A DNA stretch of 64,000 bases, from sequence record NC_070650.1. One strand, 5' to 3'. Under the pieces are notes generated by a model. The model searched no databases. It was not told the DNA's origin and worked only from the letters and a program-made list of their open reading frames with translations. Of this stretch, positions 33,712 through 48,212 are shown piece after piece. Made by a program: the position numbers and the translations under genes. The number at the start of each line of letters is the position of its first letter. Positions within the stretch are counted from its first letter, which is position 1.

Positions 33712-34806
33712 ATGAAGAAAATAACAAAACAATGTAGACTATATCCAAATAGAGAGATGAAGGAAGCCTTAGATAAGTACTTTGGGTGTTGTCGTTTTGT
33801 TTGGAATTCTTTATTAGAAGAAACCTACCATTACGCTGGCATCATAAACCAACCTTATCTCAACTCACTTTTAACCGAATTGAAAACCAAACATGATTTT
33901 TTAAAGGACTGCTCTTCCGTTGCTTTGCAGCAGGTAACCTTCAGCCTAGCATCAGCTTGGAGTGCATTTTTTAATAACGTAGCCCAAAAACCCAGATTTA
34001 AATCAAGAAAGATGGGGCATAATAGCTTTAAATTAGTGGGCGATTGTGTCAATGGGGTTGGCACAAAGTACGTGCATTTTCCAAAAATAGGGGAATGTAA
34101 ATATAAAAACAGTTGGGGAAATTTATCTAAAATATCCAGTTATGTAGTCTCTAAGAAAAGAAATGGCAAGTATTATATTTCATTTTTGGTTGAAGTAGAA
34201 CTAAAACCAAAAACACAATCTGGGATGGTGGGTATAGATGTAGGGTTATCTTATTTTGCAACGTGTGCCGATAACCAAGGCAATCATTGGAAAATAAATA
34301 ATCCAAAGTTTTTACTCAAACGACAGAGGGCGTATAAGCGAGCTAGTAGGCGTTTATCCAGGAAAGTATTGGGTTCTGCTAATCGGAATAAATCACGAAA
34401 CCGTTTAGCCGCCCTAGTAGGAAAAACGGTAAATCAAAGAAATGACTATTTGCATAAGGTATCCACGGAACTTGTGAGCAAATACCAACACATAGTCATA
34501 GAAGATTTAAACATCCGCGGGCTTTTAAAAAATAATCGATTGGCCAAACATATTTCCGATACCGGTTGGGGGGAATTCTTTAGGCAATTACACTACAAAG
34601 CCCTAATGTACAATACGCCAATCCATATTATCAAAGCCCCTAGGTGGTACCCATCTACTCAAATTTGTGCCAACTGCAATTCCAAAAGAGAAGTGCGGTT
34701 ACACTTAAATGAACGTTCTTGGACCTGTAACTACTGTGGGGCATCCCATGATCGTGATATTAATGCAGCTCAGAACTTATTGAAGCAAGTTCTGAGCAGT
34801 CGTTAG
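33712..34806 (+). CDS. tnpB: TnpB RNA-guided nuclease (IS200/IS605/IS607-type), 364 aa
   Basis: HTH RLYPN...FGCCRFVWN; RuvC-I VGIDVG; RuvC-II IVIEDL; Zn finger CANC...CNYC; RuvC-III DRDINAA. Confidence 0.95.
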   Translation: MKKITKQCRLYPNREMKEALDKYFGCCRFVWNSLLEETYHYAGIINQPYLNSLLTELKTKHDFLKDCSSVALQQVTFSLASAWSAFFNNVAQKPRFKSRKMGHNSFKLVGDCVNGVGTKYVHFPKIGECKYKNSWGNLSKISSYVVSKKRNGKYYISFLVEVELKPKTQSGMVGIDVGLSYFATCADNQGNHWKINNPKFLLKRQRAYKRASRRLSRKVLGSANRNKSRNRLAALVGKTVNQRNDYLHKVSTELVSKYQHIVIEDLNIRGLLKNNRLAKHISDTGWGEFFRQLHYKALMYNTPIHIIKAPRWYPSTQICANCNSKREVRLHLNERSWTCNYCGASHDRDINAAQNLLKQVLSSR

Positions 34807-34961: not shown

Positions 34962-35465
34962 ATGAAATTAGCTATTGTAAGTGTAATGGTTATGTCTTTT
35001 GGATTAGTCGGCTGTAACGCAAACACGGATGCCGCTATTACGCAAACAGGTAAAGTAATATCAATAGCAACCTGCACCAAAACACAATGTGAAGCTCTTG
35101 TAGCAGTAAATGGCGGTGATTGGGAATACAGTATAGTAGATGCTGCCGTTACACCCAATACGGTTGTGTCTCGCACTTGCGTTGAAGAAGAGGGGTATCA
35201 GCGATGCTCTCCAGTATGGGTATCTACCGGTAAAAAAGTAGCAAGTGACGTTATGTTACATCGCAATATTGACGTAGCAAAACCAGATACAATTATTATA
35301 AATTCTGGCAATCCAAACCACGCAACTTCACGCAATCAGAAGCACCATGACTTTATGGTCCAAGTGGCCAACGATAGTAACTTCGCTGCAAAATACCATG
35401 TAGAACAACGCATAGCTCGAGATTATCTTGCGGCTGATGCTGCTGCTGGACTGTATCAAAATTAG
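34962..35465 (+). CDS. Putative lipoprotein, 167 aa
   Basis: Signal peptide with lipobox-like LVGC. Confidence 0.6.
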   Translation: MKLAIVSVMVMSFGLVGCNANTDAAITQTGKVISIATCTKTQCEALVAVNGGDWEYSIVDAAVTPNTVVSRTCVEEEGYQRCSPVWVSTGKKVASDVMLHRNIDVAKPDTIIINSGNPNHATSRNQKHHDFMVQVANDSNFAAKYHVEQRIARDYLAADAAAGLYQN

Positions 35466-35928: not shown

Positions 35929-36669
35929 ATGAGTAAAAAACAAAACAATGTCGGACCGAACGGACGTTCAGTGTTAACCCTACGCCCTCTAGAACAAAAA
36001 GCAGAGAAAACTCTAGATGAAGTTTCGGACCGATTAACTAAAAATTCCACGCCATCATCGGGGAGTAAATCCCCAATCCCAAAACTATCGGAACCTTTGG
36101 TTGACCAAGCACCGTCAAATTTGACCTTCGGTGAGGTGGAAAATATATTACATCCGACCGCATTAGGTGTGGGTGATTTATTGGACCGTCCAGAAACTGA
36201 AACCCCACCTCCATTTACGCCACCGGGTAAATTGGAGGTTAAAGAACCAGAACCTCAGGCCGTCGGATATGTTTATGTGATTATCCACAAAACTTCAGTG
36301 GCGGTGTTTGAAACACCCAATGAAGTCACTCCTGGTAGAATCAAATCCATCATAATCAGTTCATTATCCGGAGGTGTATTTGGACTGGATGTTGTAGGGA
36401 GATGGGCGACGTTAGCCATAGACGCTACCCGTGAGTTGACTACCGTTAAGACCGTATTGGATGGTAAGGTCGAAAGCCTAAACGGCCAATACCATATCTG
36501 GTCTAAAAACGTCGCTGAAGCAGTCATCAACGATATGGTTGCAACTGGCCAGTGGGTGAAAGTGCCGACCAACTATATGAATTCGGTGGACGATAAAGAA
36601 CTGTGTCCGGTTCTTCGATTCACCCATGTGGAGAATAAAAATGCCCTCAGTCAGCCAAAAACAACATAA
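35929..36669 (+). CDS. Hypothetical protein with Pro-rich N-terminal half, 246 aa
   Basis: ORF with AAGGT RBS. Confidence 0.75.
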   Translation: MSKKQNNVGPNGRSVLTLRPLEQKAEKTLDEVSDRLTKNSTPSSGSKSPIPKLSEPLVDQAPSNLTFGEVENILHPTALGVGDLLDRPETETPPPFTPPGKLEVKEPEPQAVGYVYVIIHKTSVAVFETPNEVTPGRIKSIIISSLSGGVFGLDVVGRWATLAIDATRELTTVKTVLDGKVESLNGQYHIWSKNVAEAVINDMVATGQWVKVPTNYMNSVDDKELCPVLRFTHVENKNALSQPKTT

Positions 36670-36799
36670 TTTGATGGAGGCCGTAGCACACTCAAAAGAG
36701 TTTGCTAAAAAGGTTGGCATTCCTCAATCGGTAGGTAAGGACTTCGTTGCTGCCGATGAAAAGAAAGCCAAAAAGAAAAACGGCTCTAAGAAGTGGTAA
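36641..36799 (+). CDS. Small basic protein, 52 aa (MPSVSQKQHNLMEAVAHSKEFAKKVGIPQSVGKDF...GSKKW)
   Basis: GGAG RBS; ends at a terminator; resembles a phage small-protein family recalled from memory; missed by the ORF track. Confidence 0.75.
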   Translation: MPSVSQKQHNLMEAVAHSKEFAKKVGIPQSVGKDFVAADEKKAKKKNGSKKW

Positions 36800-36803
36800 A
36801 TCC

Positions 36804-36831
36804 TGGGAGGGTCAAAGCCCTCCCAAATATG
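36804..36831 (+). terminator. Terminator hairpin followed by TATG
   Basis: TGGGAGGGT-caaa-GCCCTCCCA-AATATG. Confidence 0.75.
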
Positions 36832-36887
36832 CCGTATATTTTTTACGGATGGTTTTGATATTCTGTAATCTAGCCGGAGTAATACAA

Positions 36888-38138
36888 ATGACAGAAGAGA
36901 TAACGTACAACGAAGAGATTGAAAACTTCTATCTCGATGAATTGATTCGCATGCCTGATGGGTGGTTCACCGAAACCGAATTGAATTTGCTGACATCGTG
37001 GCTGGCAAAGCACGCAGCAGAAATTGATTCCAACACCATCATGGCATCTGATGACTGGTTAGTGTTGGGTGAACGTAGTCGTTATGTGCAGCGTGGTGGG
37101 TGGATTACTGAGGATTACAATCCCCGATTGCTATCTGCGTTCTTCAATATCGTTCGCGGTGAAGGTATTTCCCCTATCTATGATGAACCGGGAAACTGGA
37201 TAGATGATAGCAATACCCCATACCTCAGTGGTTCTGGACACCATAAACATTTTCCGGCCATCAAATATCACGCCACCATGGACGGTGTAGTCAGAACGTG
37301 GCCCTTCGGTGCTTTGCGAGCATTCCCTAGCCGGAATAACTATTTCTGGCATACCGTATGGACACATGCTAATCCGGCACCGGAATTTCCATTCAATCCG
37401 TTGACCCGGCCGGAAGTAACTTTCTTTACTGATCAAAGCATGACTGAAGAAATTCACCTGAGTTTCGGTGGCAGCCCGGCACAGTGGTTATCCGATCGCT
37501 TTGCTCGTTTATGTCGTGGTTACATAAGCGACACAGGGGGTATCCCGATCGCCAATCGGGTTGGTACTTATCAGGCCGTCGTCATCGTCCGTAAAACGAT
37601 GTATGAGTTGATTGATGAAGGGCATTTTCAAACAACTGAATCCAGGGAAGAATTCATGGCGACGATGCTGAATGCCATGTTGATGGAAATCCCTGAGGAG
37701 GAATTATCAAACACTCCTCTGAAAACGGTTTATGATAAACTGGGTTCACCTCGAATATCGCGCCAGGCGTGGGGTAAGCTACTGGCAGTTATTTCTAGAT
37801 TACCCGCGGGCTTGCGAATTGAAGGCAATGGCATGATCAGCGCGGCCGGTACTAAAGCAACCTACGACATTACCGTCAACCCGGTGATGTTTTATGTTGA
37901 TAAAGTAGACGGCGTACATGTGTTATCGGAAGGTAATTTCAGGGAACATGGTAAAATGTATACGCTGACGGTAAACAACCGGTCGATACCTTCCCAGTTC
38001 CCCCCGTTCACGCAATTCAAGATCGTGAATGGCAGTTATCAACTCGAACCTTTTGCTTATCTCGGTCCGGCTTATTCGGTCACTGCAGAACCGCATCCAA
38101 TCTTTAACGGTAAATTACTTGATGCTTGGCCTTGGTAA
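36888..38138 (+). CDS. Hypothetical protein, 416 aa
   Basis: Start moved to MTEEITY (GGAG RBS); the upstream extension spans a terminator. Confidence 0.75.
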   Translation: MTEEITYNEEIENFYLDELIRMPDGWFTETELNLLTSWLAKHAAEIDSNTIMASDDWLVLGERSRYVQRGGWITEDYNPRLLSAFFNIVRGEGISPIYDEPGNWIDDSNTPYLSGSGHHKHFPAIKYHATMDGVVRTWPFGALRAFPSRNNYFWHTVWTHANPAPEFPFNPLTRPEVTFFTDQSMTEEIHLSFGGSPAQWLSDRFARLCRGYISDTGGIPIANRVGTYQAVVIVRKTMYELIDEGHFQTTESREEFMATMLNAMLMEIPEEELSNTPLKTVYDKLGSPRISRQAWGKLLAVISRLPAGLRIEGNGMISAAGTKATYDITVNPVMFYVDKVDGVHVLSEGNFREHGKMYTLTVNNRSIPSQFPPFTQFKIVNGSYQLEPFAYLGPAYSVTAEPHPIFNGKLLDAWPW

Positions 38139-38199
38139 TTTACGGTAATGCTCACGTAGTTATATTTATTTCATTTTCGAACATATAAAGGAAATCACC

Positions 38200-38571
38200 A
38201 TGACTTACGCTCGCGACGCACTCCTCAAACAAGCCCACAATGCCGCTATCGACATCGCATCCGATCCGGACATCTCTACCGTGGAAAAATGCCACACGGT
38301 GGTGCAGTCTGTATTTGATATCATCGACGGTAAAACGACAGAATTCCCGCAGTGCGACCTGGTGGTCAATCTGACCCCAACCAACAATCCGCCGGTAGAT
38401 GCTTTTTTCCAAGAGCATTTTGTTGCAGGCGATATCGTTAACGCCGATCGCAATCTGAGCGAAAGCTATATTCATCTGGTAGCCGAAGCAGCATCTGCGG
38501 TCGCTGACGACGATGAAGATGGCCCGACGCCATCTGGCGATGAATTCCAAGACGACGCAATCCCATTCTGA
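38200..38571 (+). CDS. Acidic hypothetical protein, 123 aa
   Basis: AAGGA RBS; D/E-rich C-terminus. Confidence 0.75.
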   Translation: MTYARDALLKQAHNAAIDIASDPDISTVEKCHTVVQSVFDIIDGKTTEFPQCDLVVNLTPTNNPPVDAFFQEHFVAGDIVNADRNLSESYIHLVAEAASAVADDDEDGPTPSGDEFQDDAIPF

Positions 38572-38648
38572 TAATGGTATCCTTCTCCCAGGTATTTTAG
38601 TACCTGGGAGAGTTAAGATATACTCTTTGTCATCACTGGGAAGTCATT

Positions 38649-39317
38649 ATGGAACCAGCATTAATCGTACCACTATTTACCATGGACATGATAAACGCCA
38701 TCAATGAACCTCATTTGATGGTTGATTTAGAAACCATGGGTATTACCACAAGAGCCCCGATCGTTGCTATCGCGGCGGTGTTGTTTATTCCCCAAACCGG
38801 GGAGGTTCTGGATAAATTCTATATCAAGATTGATTTGACGTCCAGCGTGCAGGCGGGGGCTTTGTTAGACCCAGAGACCGTGAAGTTTTGGCTGGCTCAG
38901 TCAGATGAAGCACGTAAAGAAATTTGGGGTACTGTGGGGCGCAACGATGATGTATTTACGCTCGATCAGGGGCTTCGTGAATTCGGTCAATTCGTCCATC
39001 GGTCACAGCCTAGACCCAACGCACTGAAACACTGGGCTAACGGAGCTAACTTCGATCCTCCTATTCTTGATACCGCTTATCAGTCCCTGGGCCTAAGATC
39101 ACCTCTGGCATTCTGGAAATCACTGGACGTCAGAACCATCGTGGAACTGGGGCGCCAGATCGGCATTAACCCCAAACAGGAGTTAAATCCGCTGGGTACT
39201 CCACATAAGGCGATGGCTGATTGTTTGATGCAGTGTGAGTATGTGTCCAATATATGGCAGACACTGCTTGCCCCACACACTCGGCAATATGCCCTACCTC
39301 CACGCAATACAAGGTAA
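38649..39317 (+). CDS. DEDDh 3'-5' exonuclease (exonuclease VIII/RNase T-like)
   Basis: VDLETMG, ANGANFDPPIL, HKAMADC motifs. Confidence 0.85.
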   Translation: MEPALIVPLFTMDMINAINEPHLMVDLETMGITTRAPIVAIAAVLFIPQTGEVLDKFYIKIDLTSSVQAGALLDPETVKFWLAQSDEARKEIWGTVGRNDDVFTLDQGLREFGQFVHRSQPRPNALKHWANGANFDPPILDTAYQSLGLRSPLAFWKSLDVRTIVELGRQIGINPKQELNPLGTPHKAMADCLMQCEYVSNIWQTLLAPHTRQYALPPRNTR

Positions 39318-39871
39318 TGATAATGGAAATGTATACCCGTAAAGAAGACTATTGGGCAATGTTGGCCAGTACCGTAACTGACCCCGTTCTTTCTCCGGTT
39401 TATAAAGCCATCTCATCTTCCGTTGCTTATTTCAGCAACGTATGTGTTCGAATCAATGCAACGGAGTATGACCTGTCGACGCATACTGAGTTTTCCGTGG
39501 AATACGCATTCGGCGATTTAACGTTAGAGCCGCCGACCCGACATCCATATGCTTCCATCAGACTCGTTACCGAGCCTACTGATGAAGTCATCGAAAACTC
39601 TACTGAAGCAGAAGTGGCTGATGCGTGGCGATTAGTTACTGCATCCAATTCGCATCTATCGTTTGGGTACAGCCCACTGTTTATTTTTTATCGTCACATG
39701 GTAAAAAATGGGCTGCCGCAACCCAGAGCAAAAGTCCATGAAAACTCAACTGGGCTTACTTTGGAATGGATGCTATCGAGTGGGGCCCGGGTTGTAATGG
39801 ACTACAACAACCTCTCGATGGAAGCCTGGTGGGCGGAGTGTAACGGTGAAGTGAACTCACTTCAAAACTAA
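39317..39871 (+). CDS. Hypothetical protein, 184 aa
   Basis: TAATG coupling to the exonuclease gene. Confidence 0.7.
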   Translation: MIMEMYTRKEDYWAMLASTVTDPVLSPVYKAISSSVAYFSNVCVRINATEYDLSTHTEFSVEYAFGDLTLEPPTRHPYASIRLVTEPTDEVIENSTEAEVADAWRLVTASNSHLSFGYSPLFIFYRHMVKNGLPQPRAKVHENSTGLTLEWMLSSGARVVMDYNNLSMEAWWAECNGEVNSLQN

Positions 39872-39897
39872 TCGTCATGTAACTGTGGAGACTTATC

Positions 39898-40464
39898 GTG
39901 AATACCAACTTACTACTGAGTCATCTGTTTGCAATGCATCCGTATAAACTCTGTATTGATGTAGATATGCACCGCCGAGATAAGGATAGTTTAGCTTCGT
40001 ATTTACGTTACTCCACAGCTCCGGGTAGTGAAGTGAACACCATCTTACAGGGAGACACCTACGCCATGGTCGCAGTAGATTGGCATATTGGTCGTGGTGA
40101 GTATGCGCATTACGAGGTCTGGGCCGCCACGTTACATGAGGCACTCACCGCGACAGTCAACCATCTACAGGCATTTGGTGTGGAGTCCGACGTTCTAGTG
40201 GACGTCACAGCCGGGCATGGGTTGGATACACTCATACCCAAATGTAAGCGGGGACTATCTATCTGTCGTTGGGATTTTACTCACACGGCGGGGTGCGATA
40301 AGTGGGATGTACTTCACGAATATGGGGATGAGCTATCAGCTGAATTGTTGGAGGACATACTTGAAACAAATTGTTTCGTGGATGTGGACTTCGGCGTAGT
40401 AGGTACCCGCAATCGTGGGGTTGAGTTAGGGTCATCTCTGGACGTATTGATAGAAAACGTATAA
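39898..40464 (+). CDS. Hypothetical protein, 188 aa
   Basis: GTG start with GGAG RBS. Confidence 0.7.
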   Translation: MNTNLLLSHLFAMHPYKLCIDVDMHRRDKDSLASYLRYSTAPGSEVNTILQGDTYAMVAVDWHIGRGEYAHYEVWAATLHEALTATVNHLQAFGVESDVLVDVTAGHGLDTLIPKCKRGLSICRWDFTHTAGCDKWDVLHEYGDELSAELLEDILETNCFVDVDFGVVGTRNRGVELGSSLDVLIENV

Positions 40465-40466
40465 TC

Positions 40467-40497
40467 GGGAGGGCAAATGCCCTCCCTTTATTTTTTT
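40467..40497 (+). terminator. Intrinsic terminator
   Basis: GGGAGGGC-aaat-GCCCTCCC plus T-tract. Confidence 0.85.
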
Positions 40498-40509
40498 GGA
40501 GATATCAAA

Positions 40510-40845
40510 ATGGGTTTATATGTGCGCGATGGTTTTATTGCTGAAATTGCCAACAGTATTGCGGGGCAACATAGCGACTATGACGAATCAAATGAGCTGC
40601 CAAGTGTATTTGCGTACAATATTGCCAAATATACTGCTGAAACCGTCCTTCCTACCGAAGAGCAATTGATTGATTGTAGCAAAGAAATTATTGCTATGAT
40701 TCAATTATCGGGGTCGAAAGCCGATCCTGATAATGAAGAATACGTCCAATCAATTGCAGATACTTTAACCGGTTCACTGTTTCCGTATTTCAAACCAACT
40801 GCGGTACAAGACCCAGAACGTGGGTTTGAATTACCGGATGTCTAA
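40510..40845 (+). CDS. Acidic hypothetical protein, 111 aa
   Basis: Start moved to MGLYV (GGAG RBS). Confidence 0.7.
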   Translation: MGLYVRDGFIAEIANSIAGQHSDYDESNELPSVFAYNIAKYTAETVLPTEEQLIDCSKEIIAMIQLSGSKADPDNEEYVQSIADTLTGSLFPYFKPTAVQDPERGFELPDV

Positions 40846-41205
40846 ACCCGCTTCTTGCTTCTCGGCGAAATGACTACCACCAAACAACCTCACAAATACC
40901 CACATGACCAACCAATAACGCCAAGACATCTTTAACCGATACCGGATGTTGTCTCGCAATGTAGCATCCGCATCTTTACGCGATACGGTACCTACCGTGT
41001 ACATGTAATCGTGAACTGCTGCAGCTGGGAAATAAAAATAATAAGGAGGATATAAGTTTTGGATGAATCGTGGAATGCTCGCCCCATCTGTTACGAACCC
41101 CTTTGGGATAGTAACTTCTGGCGTGACATAATCCTCAAGAAACTGAAACTGGTCTTCTTTTACTAAGTATTTTACCGGCATATCAGCAAACTGAAATTCT
41201 GTCAT
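40831..41205 (-). CDS. DUF1353-family protein
   Basis: IPKGFVTDGASIPR...AAAVHDYMY...RKDAD signature. Confidence 0.8.
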   Translation of the reverse strand: MTEFQFADMPVKYLVKEDQFQFLEDYVTPEVTIPKGFVTDGASIPRFIQNLYPPYYFYFPAAAVHDYMYTVGTVSRKDADATLRDNIRYRLKMSWRYWLVMWVFVRLFGGSHFAEKQEAGLDIR

Positions 41206-41266
41206 TTTTTATTCCCCCCAAGTAAAGTGTGACACAAAATTCGCTAACCACGTGAGTCTCTTAACT

Positions 41267-41638
41267 ATGAGTGAAACTATTCTTGGTGGTAAGACCTACC
41301 ACACGGCTGTTTATTATGCACTACAGTCAGAAGTGTTGCAGCGCTTTTCTGATCGGGTTCTGCCCCTGGTGCGCATGAACAATAAGCCCATAGAAAAACT
41401 CCCCTTGGAAATTACGGGGGTCGCTTACGGGCTTATCAACAACATCCCGGTGTTGTATGTTGAAGTTCATGCCTACGGGAAACCTAAAGACGACGACAAC
41501 ACCAAAGTGGTTATCGTTTATAACCCGGGAAATTTATTGGATTATCTGACGGATGATGCAATCACTTATAAGGGTGAAGTGTATTATGCCGGTGATAACT
41601 TCTGGCGGCTATGCGCCGAAGGAGAACGTCCATGGTAG
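41267..41638 (+). CDS. Hypothetical protein (start 41252 or 41267)
   Basis: ORF track; overlaps the next start. Confidence 0.65.
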   Translation: MSETILGGKTYHTAVYYALQSEVLQRFSDRVLPLVRMNNKPIEKLPLEITGVAYGLINNIPVLYVEVHAYGKPKDDDNTKVVIVYNPGNLLDYLTDDAITYKGEVYYAGDNFWRLCAEGERPW

Positions 41639-42012
41639 ATTCTATCTCTAAACCGTTAGCTCAGGAAGATGAAGCACTTATTCAGGAGCTTTTGGAAAAA
41701 CAGGCTGCCGAATATATCGTTGAAATAGTAAATGTAGCGGTGCCAGCCTTCCACAAAAATGCGGTCGTGGGTATGAGTCAAAAAGATTTTGCTCGTAGCC
41801 TGGCAGCTATCATGCATGCGGCAGTTTTTCCTCTAATGAAAGAGAAGCAAGACAGCGCTCTGAAATTAGCCGATTGCTATGCCATGTTTAACGAACTGGC
41901 CGTATTGACTGGAGTAGTGCCTCCAGGTACTCCGGCAACCGCAAACCATCGCCGAGCTATCGGTGCGTTCACCGCCGCGGTAGAAGCCATCAAACAAAAG
42001 GATGCGTCATGA
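41632..42012 (+). CDS. Hypothetical protein, 126 aa
   Basis: Start moved to MVDS (GGAG RBS). Confidence 0.7.
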   Translation: MVDSISKPLAQEDEALIQELLEKQAAEYIVEIVNVAVPAFHKNAVVGMSQKDFARSLAAIMHAAVFPLMKEKQDSALKLADCYAMFNELAVLTGVVPPGTPATANHRRAIGAFTAAVEAIKQKDAS

Positions 42013-42401
42013 GTCTTGAAGTTACTTATGGGGAATATAAAAAACCCCAGGTCGGCGTGAAATACCCGGTCCTGATTTGGGAAATCAGCGACGCCGCTAA
42101 GCAGTATATGTTTGATCATTTGCGTAAAGTGGTCGCCGTAACTTGTTTTAAAAACGCCGATGACGCAAAACGAGCAATGGATGTTATTGTTATCGACAAT
42201 GTGGCCACTGGCGAAATAGATGGTAATACTGTCCTGTGGGTCAATTGCTCCATTGATGGTGTTTATCGCCGAATACTGGTCAATACCCCGCAACTGAAAA
42301 CTTTTGAACCTTATTTCATCGACGGCAAAGTGACGGTAGAAGCCACAGCGCTACTGTCACCGAGTGGTACCTGGGGGTTCTATAACCTGGAAGATGTATA
42401 A
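42009..42401 (+). CDS. Hypothetical protein, 130 aa
   Basis: ATGA overlap. Confidence 0.7.
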   Translation: MSLEVTYGEYKKPQVGVKYPVLIWEISDAAKQYMFDHLRKVVAVTCFKNADDAKRAMDVIVIDNVATGEIDGNTVLWVNCSIDGVYRRILVNTPQLKTFEPYFIDGKVTVEATALLSPSGTWGFYNLEDV

Positions 42402-42655
42402 TGAATATCTATCTGGTGGAAAATAGGAATACTCGGCTTAATCTCGGGGCGTTCTATGAGTGCTACAGTGCGGTAGTTATTGCGGAAAATGAAAATGCAG
42501 CACGTCTAATTACTACTCCTCATCCGGAATTACAGCCAATGAAAACATCATTTCTGGAATGGAGTTGTTCGCCTGATGAACTCATTGTGACTAAAATTGG
42601 TAACACTGATTCACCAACGACTGGAGTTATCGTGGTTGACAGTGAGCGCAATTAA
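42401..42655 (+). CDS. Hypothetical protein, 84 aa
   Basis: TAATG coupling; SAVVIAENENAA resembles SAAVVVATDKAEA in the 52691 gene. Confidence 0.7.
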   Translation: MNIYLVENRNTRLNLGAFYECYSAVVIAENENAARLITTPHPELQPMKTSFLEWSCSPDELIVTKIGNTDSPTTGVIVVDSERN

Positions 42656-42667
42656 ATAGGGGGCAAT

Positions 42668-42922
42668 ATGTCAGAACAAGCAGATGCTTCTGTATTACAC
42701 ATGGGCGATGCATTCAATGTATTTAATTCCCTAAAGAGAACTCAACTTGATGCATTTCTCATCAATGGTCATTTGGGTGCAATGGGGGCTACTCGGGTTG
42801 AGGTGTACGACTCCAAGGTTGGAGATAGTATATTGGTTATGGAAATGGCCAATGGCGGTGCCAGCCTGCACATTTATAGTAATCTCGACCATTACCTGGC
42901 AAATAAAGAAAGACACAAATAA
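42668..42922 (+). CDS. Hypothetical protein, 84 aa
   Basis: AGGGGG RBS. Confidence 0.7.
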   Translation: MSEQADASVLHMGDAFNVFNSLKRTQLDAFLINGHLGAMGATRVEVYDSKVGDSILVMEMANGGASLHIYSNLDHYLANKERHK

Positions 42923-42954
42923 ATCATATTAGTGTGGGTGGGGTAAACATAAAG

Positions 42955-43335
42955 ATGAATTTATTGTCTGAACTGTTTAATAGGGTAGGTGCAGTTGGTG
43001 AATCGTGGGCTGACATTGAATCGGTACATTTAACCATACAAGACCAAACCGGAATGGAGCAAACATTTCAATGTCCTTACATACCAGAAAACATGGGTCA
43101 TGTGTTGGAATTGTATTTCGAACACATTGATAGCCAAGACGGTTTGACTCAAGTAGTGGTTGGCTGTATTTGGTTTAAATCTGGGAATATATTGCGATTT
43201 ATTCCCAACCAGCCGTTAGAAAAAATACTGGCACTGAGTGGGGATTGGGAGTTAGTGGAGCTTCCACCCAATCCCAAAGATGCTGATGACGGTCCAGGAT
43301 TGACCTGGTTTTATTCGGCATTAATTGGCGACTAA
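42955..43335 (+). CDS. Hypothetical protein, ~126 aa
   Basis: ORF in operon followed by a hairpin at 43346-43372. Confidence 0.65.
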   Translation: MNLLSELFNRVGAVGESWADIESVHLTIQDQTGMEQTFQCPYIPENMGHVLELYFEHIDSQDGLTQVVVGCIWFKSGNILRFIPNQPLEKILALSGDWELVELPPNPKDADDGPGLTWFYSALIGD

Positions 43336-43426
43336 AAATAACCATAGGGTGGGGATTCCCCCACCTTTTATGCCATTTTTTATATTTGGTTTAAAAACTA
43401 TGTAATCAATTCATGGGGATTAGAAA

Positions 43427-44140
43427 ATGTCTAAGAAACGCAAAGGCGTAAAAGATGCTGACGCTAAACGCATCGCGATGGCTAAGAAGCGCGGTGAGTG
43501 GGTAGAAACTCAATGTCCGGCAGTTTCTGAAATCGAGGTATCGGAGGATAAAGTCGATTACGATACTTTCCTTAAAATGCTAGACGCTGAACGTCGAGCT
43601 AATGTTGGTGGCGAAGATGAGTTCATCTGGAAAGAGGGGTTTAACTACCATCCGGCACATCCTGGTATTTGGGTGCCTTATAACGGCTGGCGCGTAAAAT
43701 TCCAACACGATATCCGGTTACGTGATGGCCGGGTGATTGAGAACTGCTACCCCAACGCCACCGCCTGGCACGGTAAAGAAGGGCGTTTCACCGATGAAGA
43801 GGTCGTTGAAATCAGACTCTGCCCACCTGACGAGCAACTATTCGCTGATTTGGATTATCTGGTTTCTCACAGTCTGGAGTCTTTCGGTGAGCACTGTTTC
43901 CCAGAGATTATCATTTCTGAAGGCGGGGTAATTTCATTCAAACCTAAACGCTATCGCTATTTCGAAAAAGGGATTATCGATGAGCGGGGTGATGTGGCTT
44001 ATATCCTCTGGGAAGGAACACATACGGCAGTTGAAGCGGCAGCTAGTAAGGTGCATAAAAACTTCATCGACCATAAACTGTATCTACTGAACGCAAACAA
44101 AGCGACGGATGACAACATCGACGATTTATATTTGGAGTAA
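43427..44140 (+). CDS. Hypothetical protein, 237 aa
   Basis: GGGGA RBS. Confidence 0.75.
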   Translation: MSKKRKGVKDADAKRIAMAKKRGEWVETQCPAVSEIEVSEDKVDYDTFLKMLDAERRANVGGEDEFIWKEGFNYHPAHPGIWVPYNGWRVKFQHDIRLRDGRVIENCYPNATAWHGKEGRFTDEEVVEIRLCPPDEQLFADLDYLVSHSLESFGEHCFPEIIISEGGVISFKPKRYRYFEKGIIDERGDVAYILWEGTHTAVEAAASKVHKNFIDHKLYLLNANKATDDNIDDLYLE

Positions 44141-44145
44141 GAAGT

Positions 44146-44760
44146 ATGTCCCCTATCACCAAAGAACAGTTATACGAACAGATTCTATTTTTATCTAATG
44201 AAGACATCATCTTTGCCAGGAAAAAAGCAGATAGTCCCAGAGGCTTTCGTTTGTCAGTGATCTGTAATGATGTCTTTACCTATGCCAGCTCCGACTCCAA
44301 AGCTATCGATGATAGTCAGATACCGCTAATTCACCATCTGTATAAAACGTACTCTTTTTATGGGGTGATTGCGTGGTTGGCATATGTCCGAAAACAAAAA
44401 CCACTGAAAGTGCACATTACCGAGAATTACAAGCGGGCTTTCCGGGAGTTAAAGGAGCACAGATTTGCGCTGCCCGAAATCATCGGTGAATCTACTAAGT
44501 TAACCGATGAGCTTGACCTTTTATTATTGGCTGATGCTCTAGGTATCGTTGATTGGTGTATCGAAGAAGGGCAGTGCCCGATACGACCTCAGTGGGGGCA
44601 GTATGTATTGTCGAATGGACAAATAATCGACATGCTATTCTCTAAAGACTATCGGGCCAGTATAAGAACTAAATCAGAAGTAACCGAGTATGTTTCAATC
44701 TATAAACAATCTGGGTTGCAGGCCTGTATCGATAAATTAAACTTGGAACAAACATCATGA
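44146..44760 (+). CDS. Hypothetical protein, 204 aa
   Basis: ORF in operon. Confidence 0.7.
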   Translation: MSPITKEQLYEQILFLSNEDIIFARKKADSPRGFRLSVICNDVFTYASSDSKAIDDSQIPLIHHLYKTYSFYGVIAWLAYVRKQKPLKVHITENYKRAFRELKEHRFALPEIIGESTKLTDELDLLLLADALGIVDWCIEEGQCPIRPQWGQYVLSNGQIIDMLFSKDYRASIRTKSEVTEYVSIYKQSGLQACIDKLNLEQTS

Positions 44761-45551
44761 CCAAACAAGAATACATCGACCAGTACGTAGCATTGAATGG
44801 CCCCATCCCACCTCATTGTTCGGTTATTCCATCTCCGTTAGGGTGGCAAATAATCGATGATGGATATCACGCAAATATCGTGGTCTGTTCAGCGAAAGAA
44901 GATATTGAATCGTCTATATCTAAATCACTGCTTCCAGAACACATAACCCAGTTCCATCAATTCATGCACGATTATCGGGATACCATCGACTGGGTGTTGT
45001 GGAATAATGAAACTGATCCTAATACCACTACACCATCTTACCACAATAGTCGTCATTTGATTGGCGCTGCGTTTATTGCGCGGTTATTGAGTGATGGTGA
45101 CCCTAAATGTATTCAGGCCATGTTCATTCATGATTTTCAACACCCAAAAGCAGCGAGTGATTTAGATAATATTATCCACTCACTTAGTGTAGCAAAACAA
45201 TGCGATTATCCTCACGAAATTGATGATGTATTAACGACATTGGTTTTCGGCACCCAATACAACCCTCAAGACCCATATCCCGCGGTTGAAGATCCGAAGA
45301 TTGCCTTATGTCGAGATGCTGACCAAATCTACGCTACTATGATGTTTAATTTGGGGGTTTACTTGGGCCTCGAACATGAAGTAGGAGGTAAGTTGGGTTT
45401 GTCTGGGTCCGATTTTCTTCTGCGCAATATGAATTATGTCAGAAATATCGGGGATAATCTGTATTTGCCCCAAAGCAAAGATCTACATAAACAATATCGG
45501 CAGAAATGCCTGAACGAACATCTCGTATTTTCTTCAATTTATATTAACTAA
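44757..45551 (+). CDS. HD-domain phosphohydrolase
   Basis: YHNSRH, MFIHDFQH, RDADQ motifs. Confidence 0.75.
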   Translation: MTKQEYIDQYVALNGPIPPHCSVIPSPLGWQIIDDGYHANIVVCSAKEDIESSISKSLLPEHITQFHQFMHDYRDTIDWVLWNNETDPNTTTPSYHNSRHLIGAAFIARLLSDGDPKCIQAMFIHDFQHPKAASDLDNIIHSLSVAKQCDYPHEIDDVLTTLVFGTQYNPQDPYPAVEDPKIALCRDADQIYATMMFNLGVYLGLEHEVGGKLGLSGSDFLLRNMNYVRNIGDNLYLPQSKDLHKQYRQKCLNEHLVFSSIYIN

Positions 45552-45609
45552 TTTATCATAGTGGGGATGGAAATGAGTATAGTCATCAAGCAGGGAAACG
45601 CATAATAAC

Positions 45610-45641
45610 GGGAGACTTCGGTCTCCCCCCTTATTTTTTTT
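45610..45641 (+). terminator. Intrinsic terminator
   Basis: GGGAGAC-ttcg-GTCTCCC plus T-tract. Confidence 0.85.
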
Positions 45642-45680
45642 GCTTTTTTTATTTGTTCCTAAATAAAACATTTATACCTT

Positions 45681-45688
45681 TATATTAC
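45681..45688 (+). promoter_or_regulatory. Early-promoter-like motif TATATTAC
   Basis: Upstream AAATAAAA run; 41 nt before the 45730 ATG. Confidence 0.65.
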
Positions 45689-45729
45689 TTACGGGACTAA
45701 GTAACATCCCACAACTGAGGAATTTTAAA

Positions 45730-46188
45730 ATGGCAGATTGCAGCATTGGTCCAGTATCTACCCTCCCTGGTTCCATCCGTGCAGTTCCTGAAGGAACCGA
45801 GTGCGATAACCACCCTGGGGTATTGGCGGTGAAACGCGTCCAAGGCGAAACAGATTCTTTTGGATGTGAGTATTTGGATATGTGTCAGGAGTGTTACGAT
45901 GCATTTAAGGATGAGGTGAGTAACACTGATATGTCGGGTATCTGTGACTGGTGCAAGAAAAGCGCAGACCGGGTGTTTAATCACCGGGATATAGAAGAAG
46001 GGACCTGCGGGCGGGTCTACCAAGTATGTCAAGCGTGCATCGATGCCGAAAAGAAAGAATGGGCCGAAGAGCGTGATTGTCTGGATGACGATGAATGGTG
46101 GGATTCTCGGGACCTGGATGATGAGTTGGGTCCCGACGATTTTGATGACGATGCTGACGATAAATACGCTGAACGGCTGGGGGAATAG
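45730..46188 (+). CDS. Cys-rich (Zn-binding) protein with highly acidic tail, 152 aa
   Basis: CDNH, CQEC, CDWC, CQAC; C-terminal DDDEWWDSRDLDDELGPDDFDDDADD. Confidence 0.75.
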   Translation: MADCSIGPVSTLPGSIRAVPEGTECDNHPGVLAVKRVQGETDSFGCEYLDMCQECYDAFKDEVSNTDMSGICDWCKKSADRVFNHRDIEEGTCGRVYQVCQACIDAEKKEWAEERDCLDDDEWWDSRDLDDELGPDDFDDDADDKYAERLGE

Positions 46189-46191
46189 TAA

Positions 46192-46392
46192 ATGTCAGAA
46201 CTCATAGCCGTCAGCAAAGAACAATTTATCGAGCACATGTCGCAACTTAATAAAACTACCCGAATCGGTAAACGCCTTACTGATTTTGCCGATGGTAGTC
46301 ATGGGGTACAATACCCGGATGATGCCGGCACGGTACTCGGTGAGGTTTTTCATAGCCGTGAATTCGGTACTATCTGGAGAATAAAAAGGTGA
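46192..46392 (+). CDS. Hypothetical protein, 66 aa
   Basis: ORF in operon. Confidence 0.6.
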   Translation: MSELIAVSKEQFIEHMSQLNKTTRIGKRLTDFADGSHGVQYPDDAGTVLGEVFHSREFGTIWRIKR

Positions 46393-46730
46393 ATCAAAAG
46401 ATACTAATGGCATTATTTAGAACACAGATGTTTATTACAGATGCTCTATTTGGGTATCCTGAAGAGTATGCCGTCTACCCCGACGGAAAAATGGTAGATA
46501 TCAGACATGTGGGCGGGTTGTGGCGATTAAAACCTACGTACACCTATACCCGCCGTCGCCTATCCCCATTTAAAAATAATTTTAGGTATGGGTGGGAAAT
46601 AGTATCTGCGCCCCCAGAATACAGTGATTGTGTAGGTATCGCTAATTTAACCGAAGACCCAGGAACAGCAATCTATAACCTGTTAAAGGGTAGGGAATTA
46701 ATCAACAATCTACCCTTCAAACACTTTTGA
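46389..46730 (+). CDS. Hypothetical protein, 113 aa
   Basis: GTGA overlap. Confidence 0.6.
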   Translation: MNQKILMALFRTQMFITDALFGYPEEYAVYPDGKMVDIRHVGGLWRLKPTYTYTRRRLSPFKNNFRYGWEIVSAPPEYSDCVGIANLTEDPGTAIYNLLKGRELINNLPFKHF

Positions 46731-47230
46731 TGGACGGGATCATGTTACTTCATCTTAGTTTTAAAAATAATCTTTCTGGGACGGTAATCCCCAGAGCCGT
46801 AGCGGGTAGTGAATTAGGTTTAGACGCTATCTATCCAGAACCCAATACACCGAGAGTTTGTTTTGGGCCATCGGTAATAAAATGCTTCCAGGCGATATAC
46901 CCCAACATCTCTGATTTTTTTGAAGTTAAAAAATATCCGTACATGGATTTTTACGTATACCGAACAAAAAGTAACAGTCCAGCGGGTTTGATCCCAAATG
47001 CTGAAATAGTGGCCAATCATTGGGTTCATGATGCACACGTAACTGGTGAATCTTGGGTAGTTAAGCCAGTTGAAGTATATTTATACCAAAAGGTGCGAAT
47101 TAAAAACACGAATTCAATTGGTAGTTTAAACTACCATCCATTTGGCGATCAAAAAGAGCCTCTACGTACATTAGCTCCAAAAACAGCCGTTATAGAACTT
47201 CTACCATTAAACGGTAGCGACGAGTGGTAA
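46727..47230 (+). CDS. Possible ADP-ribosyltransferase-fold protein, 167 aa; ends GSDEW
   Basis: LLHLS, PRVCFGPSV, DAHVTGESW pattern resembles H/S/E ART motifs. Confidence 0.45.
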   Translation: MMDGIMLLHLSFKNNLSGTVIPRAVAGSELGLDAIYPEPNTPRVCFGPSVIKCFQAIYPNISDFFEVKKYPYMDFYVYRTKSNSPAGLIPNAEIVANHWVHDAHVTGESWVVKPVEVYLYQKVRIKNTNSIGSLNYHPFGDQKEPLRTLAPKTAVIELLPLNGSDEW

Positions 47231-47246
47231 TCAATCAGGGGTATGT

Positions 47247-47681
47247 ATGGGTACGTTCTTAGAATTTTATAAAGTAGATAAAAACAAAGTCTCAGAGAAA
47301 ATGTTGAAGTATCTCAACATGGACCAGATTGAGAGCAATATAGCATCAGACGAAGATGCCAGTTTCTTTGATTTGACCATAGACTGGGAGTTCCCGGCCA
47401 TCATTGAACTTGTTAAATTTTCTCGCACGGGGCAAATACGCCAGGTCATGAACGCCTTTATGTCGAGTAAGGGCATTGTTGACGATATTTACAACACCAG
47501 TATGGTCATGTCAAAACAGCTGGTCGCGGAGCTAATAACATATCTAAATAGTGTCGCGATATGGGATACTGAGGATGTATGGTTCTCCCCCGGGGAAAAA
47601 GAATTTGCGGTGGCCTTCTTCCAACGTACTTTAAATACCCATGATTTCGATAATGAGTATTTCTTTTATACTTACTACTAA
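47247..47681 (+). CDS. Hypothetical acidic protein, 144 aa
   Basis: AGGGG RBS; lies between two ART-like genes. Confidence 0.7.
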   Translation: MGTFLEFYKVDKNKVSEKMLKYLNMDQIESNIASDEDASFFDLTIDWEFPAIIELVKFSRTGQIRQVMNAFMSSKGIVDDIYNTSMVMSKQLVAELITYLNSVAIWDTEDVWFSPGEKEFAVAFFQRTLNTHDFDNEYFFYTYY

Positions 47682-47693
47682 TGCGGAGAATTT

Positions 47694-48212
47694 ATGGATG
47701 TCAGTAAATATTACCATATAGATGAACAGGCTATTCAGGAATATTTGAAATATGAATCAATACTAGAAATATCGGCAAAATGGTTAATGAGAGATGGACA
47801 TCAAACATTCTCTGAACTTCAAGAAATTAATAAACTGGTTCAAAAAATTCAACAAATACCACAACCCAAAAAATTATATCGGGGGGTTAACTTTAATGTA
47901 TTTAGTAATACGGTCGGATTACCCAAAAACCCGAATTTGGGATACGCGTACGACGTAACATTTGATGTGGCAACCAGTTTCACCACCGAAATAAAAGTAG
48001 CCTCTGCTTTTGGTAAAACTATACTAGAGACTGTCGACCCAATAGACCGAAATATATTCTTGTGTATTCCACAAGAATTATCATTAGCGGTACAAAGGAA
48101 ATTTAAATTCCCGCTACCAAACATGCATGAATGGGTACTAATGAAAGAAAATACCACATTGAAAATAAAAATTATAAAGACGAAGGCATCATTAGGATCA
48201 CTTAAATGGTAA
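47694..48212 (+). CDS. ADP-ribosyltransferase-like protein (R-S-E clade), 172 aa; ends GSLKW
   Basis: KLYRGV, ATSFTTEIKVASAFG, HEWVL motifs. Confidence 0.65.
   Translation: MDVSKYYHIDEQAIQEYLKYESILEISAKWLMRDGHQTFSELQEINKLVQKIQQIPQPKKLYRGVNFNVFSNTVGLPKNPNLGYAYDVTFDVATSFTTEIKVASAFGKTILETVDPIDRNIFLCIPQELSLAVQRKFKFPLPNMHEWVLMKENTTLKIKIIKTKASLGSLKW

Follow-up and report, generated by a model that had tools for sequence, protein, structure and literature searches.

A C-terminal G-S-x-x-W tail on unrelated proteins of the jumbo phage vB_KvM-Eowyn as a probable prohead-loading peptide

G-S-x-x-W ends in the Eowyn genome

The window, i.e. the whole stretch of 64,000 nucleotides that was analysed, corresponds to positions 186001-250000 of the record of Klebsiella phage vB_KvM-Eowyn (NC_070650.1, 265,389 bp), and the two sequences are identical. 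Annotated proteins of this phage include chimallin, which forms the nuclear shell, the tubulin PhuZ, and split multisubunit RNA polymerases; therefore, Eowyn is a nucleus-forming jumbo phage. Three genes in the window, gp244, gp265, and gp267, encode proteins with G-S-x-x-W at the C-terminus, as the original prediction, made from the sequence alone, had stated (Table 1). The gene ending at 47230 had been given a TTG start at 46727, while the annotated start is the ATG at 46742; its end is unchanged. The same tail is found outside the window on gp189 and on the adjoining head maturation protease, gp190. We suggest that it is probably a C-terminal prohead-loading peptide, which has also been acquired by accessory enzymes.

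Table 1. Tailed proteins of Eowyn, the tail-less contrast gp241, and further features discussed in the text. Positions are those of the window unless the record is named.
Feature	Description	C-terminal end	Position	Strand	Remarks
gp244	52-residue basic protein, annotated 'structural protein'	NGSKKW	36641..36799	+	Tail codons 36782-36796
gp265	162 residues, weakly ART-like fold	NGSDEW	46742..47230	+	Tail codons 47213-47227
gp267	172 residues, predicted R-S-E-type ADP-ribosyltransferase (Alt/C3-like)	LGSLKW	47694..48212	+	Tail codons 48195-48209
gp189	Protease neighbour; N-terminal domain akin to gp265	RGSELW	Record 170562-171272 (outside window)		
gp190	Head maturation protease	IGSQLW	Record 171290-172051 (outside window)		Adjoins gp189
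gp241	Tail-less internal contrast	AAAGLYQN	34962..35465	+	Last 45 residues paralogous to gp244 domain (BLASTP E = 4e-6)
Transposase gene (annotated)			33712-34806	+	
Acidic protein	123 residues	DEFQDDAIPF	38200-38571	+	
DnaQ-like exonuclease gene			38649-39317		
Hairpin 3' of gp244	Terminator-like, GGGAGGG-N4-CCCTCCC		36806-36830		
Hairpin 3' of protease gene	Terminator-like, near-identical		Record 172058-172085		
gp188	Head protein, phiKZ gp176 homologue		Record 169822-170550		

The Eowyn genome was rebuilt from the public record, and the genes called with our own gene caller were reconciled with the annotation tables to give exactly 336 coding sequences. Five of the 336 proteins end in G-S-x-x-W, while only 0.02 are expected. 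The C-termini were scanned for every pattern that fixes three of the six terminal positions, and 300 sets of internal 6-mers served as nulls. The top motif in this unbiased scan is xGSxxW, with a binomial P = 3.5e-11; the best null P is 1.6e-7, and none of the 300 nulls matches the score of xGSxxW. Thus, the claim that these ends exceed the amino-acid expectation holds when the count is made genome-wide. Proteins ending in W number 11 in Eowyn, with 4.8 expected, and once the motif carriers are excluded there are 5, which is about chance. The W-ending genes at 36888 and 41267, which had been put forward as further cases, fall outside the motif and so have to be set aside. Likewise, gp068 (HGSW), gp098, gp245, and gp252 were rejected as carriers, being W-ending but outside the motif, and gp131 (GSSQLW) was rejected because its W is not kept in close relatives.

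The DNA pattern Gly-Ser-N6-TGG-stop occurs at six sites in the genome, both strands included, and five of these are annotated gene ends. The carriers use GGA, GGT, or GGC for Gly and AGT, AGC, TCT, or TCA for Ser, so that both TCN and AGY codons are represented; in the window, the pairs are GGC-TCT, GGT-AGC, and GGA-TCA. Since the codons differ and the DNA pattern is nearly confined to gene ends, the conservation is at the protein level, in agreement with the original prediction. BLASTP among the five carriers detected no paralogy except a weak match between gp189 and gp265, for which profile comparison with hhalign (probability 96.7%, E = 3.3e-10) showed a shared domain. The description of the carriers as otherwise unrelated therefore has to be qualified by the domain that gp265 shares with gp189.

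Could the shared ends have arisen by chance, by descent from paralogues, or from a DNA-level element at gene ends? The scan also flags ExxGFx in four proteins of SPN3US (L029-L041) and xxFHWx in three proteins of RP31 (L056-L069), and we suspect that both come from paralogue families. These cases, together with the distant paralogy of gp189 and gp265, are what such an explanation can draw on. However, at least four unrelated folds are tailed, namely an S80 protease, an SNF2 helicase, an R-S-E ADP-ribosyltransferase (ART), and a small basic protein. Furthermore, the motif is kept across 120 protease homologues and at about 50% protein identity in G001 (IMG/VR, 278,524 bp), the closest complete outgroup, which was fetched and gene-called in full. 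With the P value, the nulls, and the difference between TCN and AGY codons given above, this explanation is effectively refuted.

The tailed proteins of the window

gp244 consists of a conserved domain of 40 residues, followed by A-D-E and a basic linker, and then by N-G-S-K-K-W. This tail is retained in KpGz_1 and KpHz_2. The family of small basic proteins to which gp244 belongs is widespread, and 12 of 120 members end in W; in the homologues from phiKZ (gp165.1) and PhiPA3, residues 1-42 are shared and the W tail is absent. gp244 matches PHROG 16759, as do residues 123-161 of the tail-less gp241, and it also matches the N-termini of two PHROGs of virion structural proteins. The 50-residue module common to gp241 and gp244 matches the N-termini of the 'virion structural protein' PHROGs 22033 and 25121.

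By hhalign against the gp189 family, gp265 and the N-terminal domain of gp189 are distant paralogues. Its orthologue in KpHz_2 (75% identity) ends SGSAKW, so that G, S, and W are kept and the two x positions are changed. In the family alignment (A2), some members have the tail (LSGSAKW, VPGSRRW followed by five residues, ALPPSASW) and it is absent from others. The AlphaFold2 model of gp265 has a predicted local distance difference test score (pLDDT) of 91.5, with the last four residues disordered (pLDDT < 50). Foldseek gave a weak ART-fold match to the cholera/LT A subunit (probability 0.9, E 0.04, template modelling (TM) score 0.41-0.44).

In the gp267 family alignment (A3), R63, S95, and E146 are invariant, with the consensus LYRG / SFTTD / TQxEVILLPP; Eowyn gp267 has Met, instead of Gln or Glu, two residues before the catalytic Glu. 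Weak ART matches were found in Pfam and PHROG, and the top Foldseek matches are all R-S-E ARTs, with weak E-values. Thus, by its R / S-x-T / x-x-E signature and predicted fold, gp267 is classed as an R-S-E ADP-ribosyltransferase. The original prediction had called both gp265 and gp267 ART-like; this is upheld for gp267 and applies only weakly to gp265. The AlphaFold2 model of gp267 has a pLDDT of 89, with block means of 72 and 49 over the C-terminal residues 161-172. Sixteen of 34 family representatives end in W (KKPLWGMW, KKPVWLRW, ALPPSSRW, LLGSIDW), and the remaining ones end directly after the last strand. The gp267 gene is absent from KpGz_1 and KpHz_2. With tailed and tail-less members in each of the gp244, gp265, and gp267 families, the tail behaves, as far as the alignments indicate, as an appended module.

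Two other features lie near these genes. A gene annotated as a transposase is located between the tail-fibre genes and the accessory block that holds the three carriers. The acidic protein of 123 residues, encoded directly upstream of the DnaQ-like exonuclease gene, has a C-terminus like the tip of the E. coli single-stranded DNA-binding protein (SSB), DDDIPF. This acidic-(I/L)PF end is kept in KpHz_2, KpGz_1, and G001, and it is shared by proteins of phiKZ (205607-205969) and RAY (195308-196078). It may act as a second docking motif at the C-terminus, one that imitates the SSB tail.

The protease tail and its counterparts

The protease gp190 belongs to Peptidase S80 (PF20034, E = 3e-72, residues 12-223 of 253), with the catalytic domain ending near residue 223, and it matches PHROG 3014, 'head maturation protease', with E = 1e-73. 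A terminal W is present in 112 of 120 S80 protease homologues. Of 142 unique protease tails, 121 have Pro at position -6, 100 have Ala, Pro, or Gly at -5, and 135 have Ser, Tyr, Trp, or Phe at -4, while Lys or Arg is frequent at -7 and -8. Judging by these aligned ends, the wider family tail is [K/R]-P-x-[S/Y/W/F]-x-x-W-COOH, and G-S-x-x-W is its Eowyn-lineage form. A position-specific scoring matrix made from the protease tails scores the Eowyn dialect, which is without Pro at -6, too low, and it served as a side check only. A scan of the IMG/VR relatives for the DNA pattern in any frame performed no better than its reversed control.

The terminal W and two linker residues, E197 (in S-L-E) and E223 (in A-M-E), are all invariant in the protease alignment (A1). 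Compared by eye, E197 of gp190 lies in the same conserved motif as the AQE-203 self-cleavage site of the SPN3US protease (PMC5694885). That protease, gp245, removes its own C-terminal propeptide of 64 residues; in the 245(am66) mutant, the protease is 26 residues shorter at this end, and it has activity in vitro but is not found in proheads. The authors deduce that the C-terminal region contains a signal for prohead targeting (PMC5694885, PMC7411985, PMC10052503).

We compared 80 protease-flanking loci from IMG/VR. The tail of the gp189-family neighbour matches that of the protease from the same phage, as in the paired ends RPGSSAW / RPGSAYW (L116), LPPSARW / EPPSARW (about ten loci), and APPSNRW / APPSAAW (L174). 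The same pairing is seen for neighbours outside the gp189 family: VPAYTKW / PPAYTKW (L180) and TPAYLKW / KPIYSTW (L181). In one locus (L119:10863-12605), three consecutive genes downstream of the protease are tailed (QPKSSEW, EPPSSNW, EPPSAHW); therefore, the use of the tail on multiple cargoes is not limited to Eowyn.

The SNF2-like helicase gp057 ends TPRSTEW in Eowyn, where the protease ends IGSQLW, and its homologue in G001 ends RPRSSMW, where the protease ends RPGSSAW. Thus, the G001 helicase has P-R-S-x-x-W, while G-S-x-x-W is found there on the protease, the gp189 homologue, and an unrelated protein of 159 residues. In phiKZ and PhiPA3, the proteases end RPGFMR (gp175) and IPHYMRKR, with the W lost and P-x-[F/Y]-M-R kept, and the helicases end QPAYMRF (gp203) and VPAYMRFGG. 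In the whole phiKZ proteome, P-x-[FYW]-M-R occurs at only two sites, the C-termini of gp175 and gp203. The tail variants of the protease, the gp189 family, and the helicase change together within genomes. For the ARTs, seven loci were found in a search for covariation with the protease, two of them on contigs with a known protease; the -4 residue agrees in one and differs in the other. The comparison of homologues thus extends the tail beyond Eowyn, across the protease, helicase, gp189, and ART families of jumbo phages.

The phiKZ helicase gp203 is reported to be proteolytically processed and packaged in the head (10.1101/2025.11.23.690004). RAY gp131, the homologue of Eowyn gp057, is associated with virions and is found where the capsids are, and another RAY helicase is located in the nucleus (10.1101/2023.02.24.529968). 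This bears on the proposal, among those of the original prediction, that the tail is a trafficking signal which takes proteins to the phage nucleus or into it. In favour of this proposal, Eowyn has genes for both chimallin and PhuZ and must therefore distribute its proteins among compartments. However, the prohead protease works in proheads, the tailed RAY helicase is with the capsids rather than in the nucleus, and no replication or transcription protein among the 336 coding sequences has the tail. A nuclear sorting signal is therefore very improbable.

The carriers include a protease, ARTs, and a helicase, i.e. most of them are enzymes able to harm the producing cell. C-terminal degrons are established in bacteria, and the tail might thus be a degron or quality-control tag, which keeps harmful enzymes scarce in the cytoplasm unless they are sequestered. 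We find this highly improbable, since gp244 is small, basic, and non-enzymatic, and we know of no degron with the sequence of the tail. Furthermore, the motif co-evolves within phage genomes whose hosts range from Pseudomonas to Klebsiella, and a phage-encoded receptor is therefore favoured over a host protease.

Two further observations concern the protease locus. Near-identical terminator-like hairpins are located directly 3' of gp244 and of the protease gene. The head protein gp188 is encoded directly upstream of the protease in nearly all relatives, and its homologues (L116-L195) have a conserved C-terminal end, V-E-x-I-E-x-L-L-R-x. gp188 is a candidate partner, or its end is a candidate second terminal motif.

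Proposed role in head loading

What is the function of the tail? We propose that a short disordered C-terminal peptide is common across nucleus-forming jumbo phages, with G-S-x-x-W-COOH as the Eowyn version. The tail would dock its carrier on the assembling prohead, at a putative receptor in the core or scaffold, on the inner face of the major capsid protein, or at the portal. Recognition would be through the free terminal Trp, the -4 residue, and the Pro or small residues that precede it, and the docked carrier would end up enclosed in the head. The ancestral carriers may have been the S80 prohead protease, the head-packaged SNF2-like helicase, and the protease-adjacent gp189 family. The C-terminal propeptide of the protease would later be self-cleaved at conserved Glu sites, putatively E197 and E223 in gp190; candidate Glu sites also precede the tail in gp244 (A-D-E) and gp189 (S-V-E). 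The ARTs and small proteins would have picked up the tail in the Eowyn lineage and in others, and gp244, gp265, and gp267 are predicted to be packaged and delivered with the DNA, as is T4 Alt. That the tail is a loading signal, and that these three proteins are packaged and ejected, is what we infer; the presence of the same tail on the protease, whose C-terminal region is implicated in prohead incorporation by the SPN3US work, and on a helicase family packaged in the head supports capsid loading indirectly.

Several points weigh against this proposal. The truncation in SPN3US am66 removes 26 residues, which is more than the terminal motif, and the other SPN3US head proteins carry N-terminal propeptides (PMC10052503). 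The gp189 homologues of SPN3US and RAY are without the tail, and the protease is essentially the sole carrier in these phages; tail sharing is therefore lineage-dependent. There is no Glu ahead of the tail in Eowyn gp267, and this tail may thus not be removable. On contig IMGVR_UViG_3300038443_002533, the -4 residue is W in the ART tail and S in the protease tail. Few independent lineages stand behind the covariation, and local recombination between adjacent genes could be behind part of the similarity between the tails of the protease and its neighbours.

A related possibility is that the tail binds a shared partner outside the prohead interior, such as a chaperone or adaptor, the prohead assembly site at the inner membrane, or the catalytic domain of the protease. 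In the last case, the role of the tail would be that of an exosite or an auto-inhibitory plug, with the remaining carriers as regulators or substrates. The sequence data are compatible with this, since they show a shared, co-evolving C-terminal peptide and do not by themselves identify its receptor. For the membrane site, many tails of the family have Lys/Arg-Pro-x-Trp-x-x-Trp, a composition typical of membrane-interface peptides, while those of Eowyn, of polar or acidic character (NGSDEW) and with one Trp each, are poorly suited to membrane binding. However, both of the best-studied carrier families end inside heads (helicase: 10.1101/2023.02.24.529968, 10.1101/2025.11.23.690004; protease: PMC7411985, PMC5694885), and the C-terminally truncated protease is missing from proheads rather than mis-regulated (PMC7411985). 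Thus, we consider a partner outside the prohead unlikely. Capsid loading was one of the functions put forward in the original prediction, together with binding of a common partner and nuclear trafficking; loading by way of a shared partner is retained here, and trafficking to the nucleus is not, given the location of the RAY helicase.

The closest known system is the propeptide of the giant-phage S80 proteases, SPN3US gp245 and phiKZ gp175. gp190 belongs to the same family, and its tail ends the equivalent propeptide, for which published work infers prohead targeting followed by self-cleavage. In that work the propeptide is treated as a property of the protease only, and the terminal motif is unnamed, whereas we find the motif also on helicases, ARTs, a small basic protein, and the gp189 family. 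We found no description of the shared terminal motif in the searchable literature. The original prediction of an undescribed sorting signal is thus partly borne out: a role for the protease C-terminus had already been hypothesised in print, and what appears to be new, as we found no paper on it, is the sharing of the terminal motif with other proteins.

The tail also resembles the capsid-targeting sequence (CTS) of T4, a short peptide on unrelated proteins (IPI-III, Alt), including an ART, by which these are taken into the prohead core and later delivered along with the DNA. Similarly, the Eowyn-type tail is common to the protease, the SNF2 helicase, the R-S-E ART, the gp189/gp265 domain, and the small basic protein. 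However, the T4 peptide stands at the N-terminus, is about 10 residues in length, and has an unrelated sequence, whereas in every carrier the jumbo-phage tag forms the very C-terminus and ends in an obligatory Trp. The T4 CTS is cut off by the prohead protease; in the jumbo phages, removal of the tail is presumed only for the protease and, on the strength of the literature, for the helicase.

In other viruses with HK97-fold capsids (herpesvirus UL26/UL26.5, lambda C/Nu3, the HK97 gp4 tail), the protease enters the procapsid by a C-terminal segment shared with an assembly protein from the same locus. This sharing is through nested in-frame genes or a longer helical segment; by contrast, separate and unrelated jumbo-phage genes share just a motif of 6-8 residues. 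The cargo-loading peptides of encapsulins are also short, disordered, and mostly C-terminal; found on diverse enzymes, they are modular and appendable, and they attach to the inside of an HK97-fold shell. In these respects the phage tail is similar, being short, terminal, and disordered in the gp265 and gp267 models, with tailed and tail-less members in one family. However, encapsulins are bacterial nanocompartments rather than viruses, and for the phage tail, binding to the capsid protein is only proposed. The encapsulin peptide consensus is rich in Gly, Ser, and Leu and has no terminal Trp, and thus differs from the phage tail.

A broader reading is that a single code, [K/R]-P-x-[S/Y/W/F]-x-x-W-COOH, with dialects in particular lineages (e.g. 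Eowyn, G-S-x-x-W; phiKZ, P-x-[F/Y]-M-R), is a general signal for head cargo in the Chimalliviridae. It would give a list of injected proteins, ADP-ribosyltransferases included, that can be read from sequence, and it would be portable to foreign cargo. We regard this as possible, though we lean slightly against it. The motif is visible in phiKZ (gp175, gp203) and is therefore testable in existing genetic systems, and the same holds for SPN3US.

The phiKZ-like phages have to select approximately 50 head proteins and a large mass of ejected protein for packaging, and the only elements implicated in this so far are N-terminal propeptides of some length and, in the protease, a 'C-terminal region' without closer definition. 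If the proposal is correct, there would be one receptor site in the prohead and a sequence rule that predicts injected cargo, here two ART-like enzymes and a small basic protein. The tail would also serve as a small tag with which proteins of choice could be packaged into the heads of jumbo phages. For Eowyn itself, gp244, gp265, and gp267 may then act earliest in infection, before the nucleus forms.

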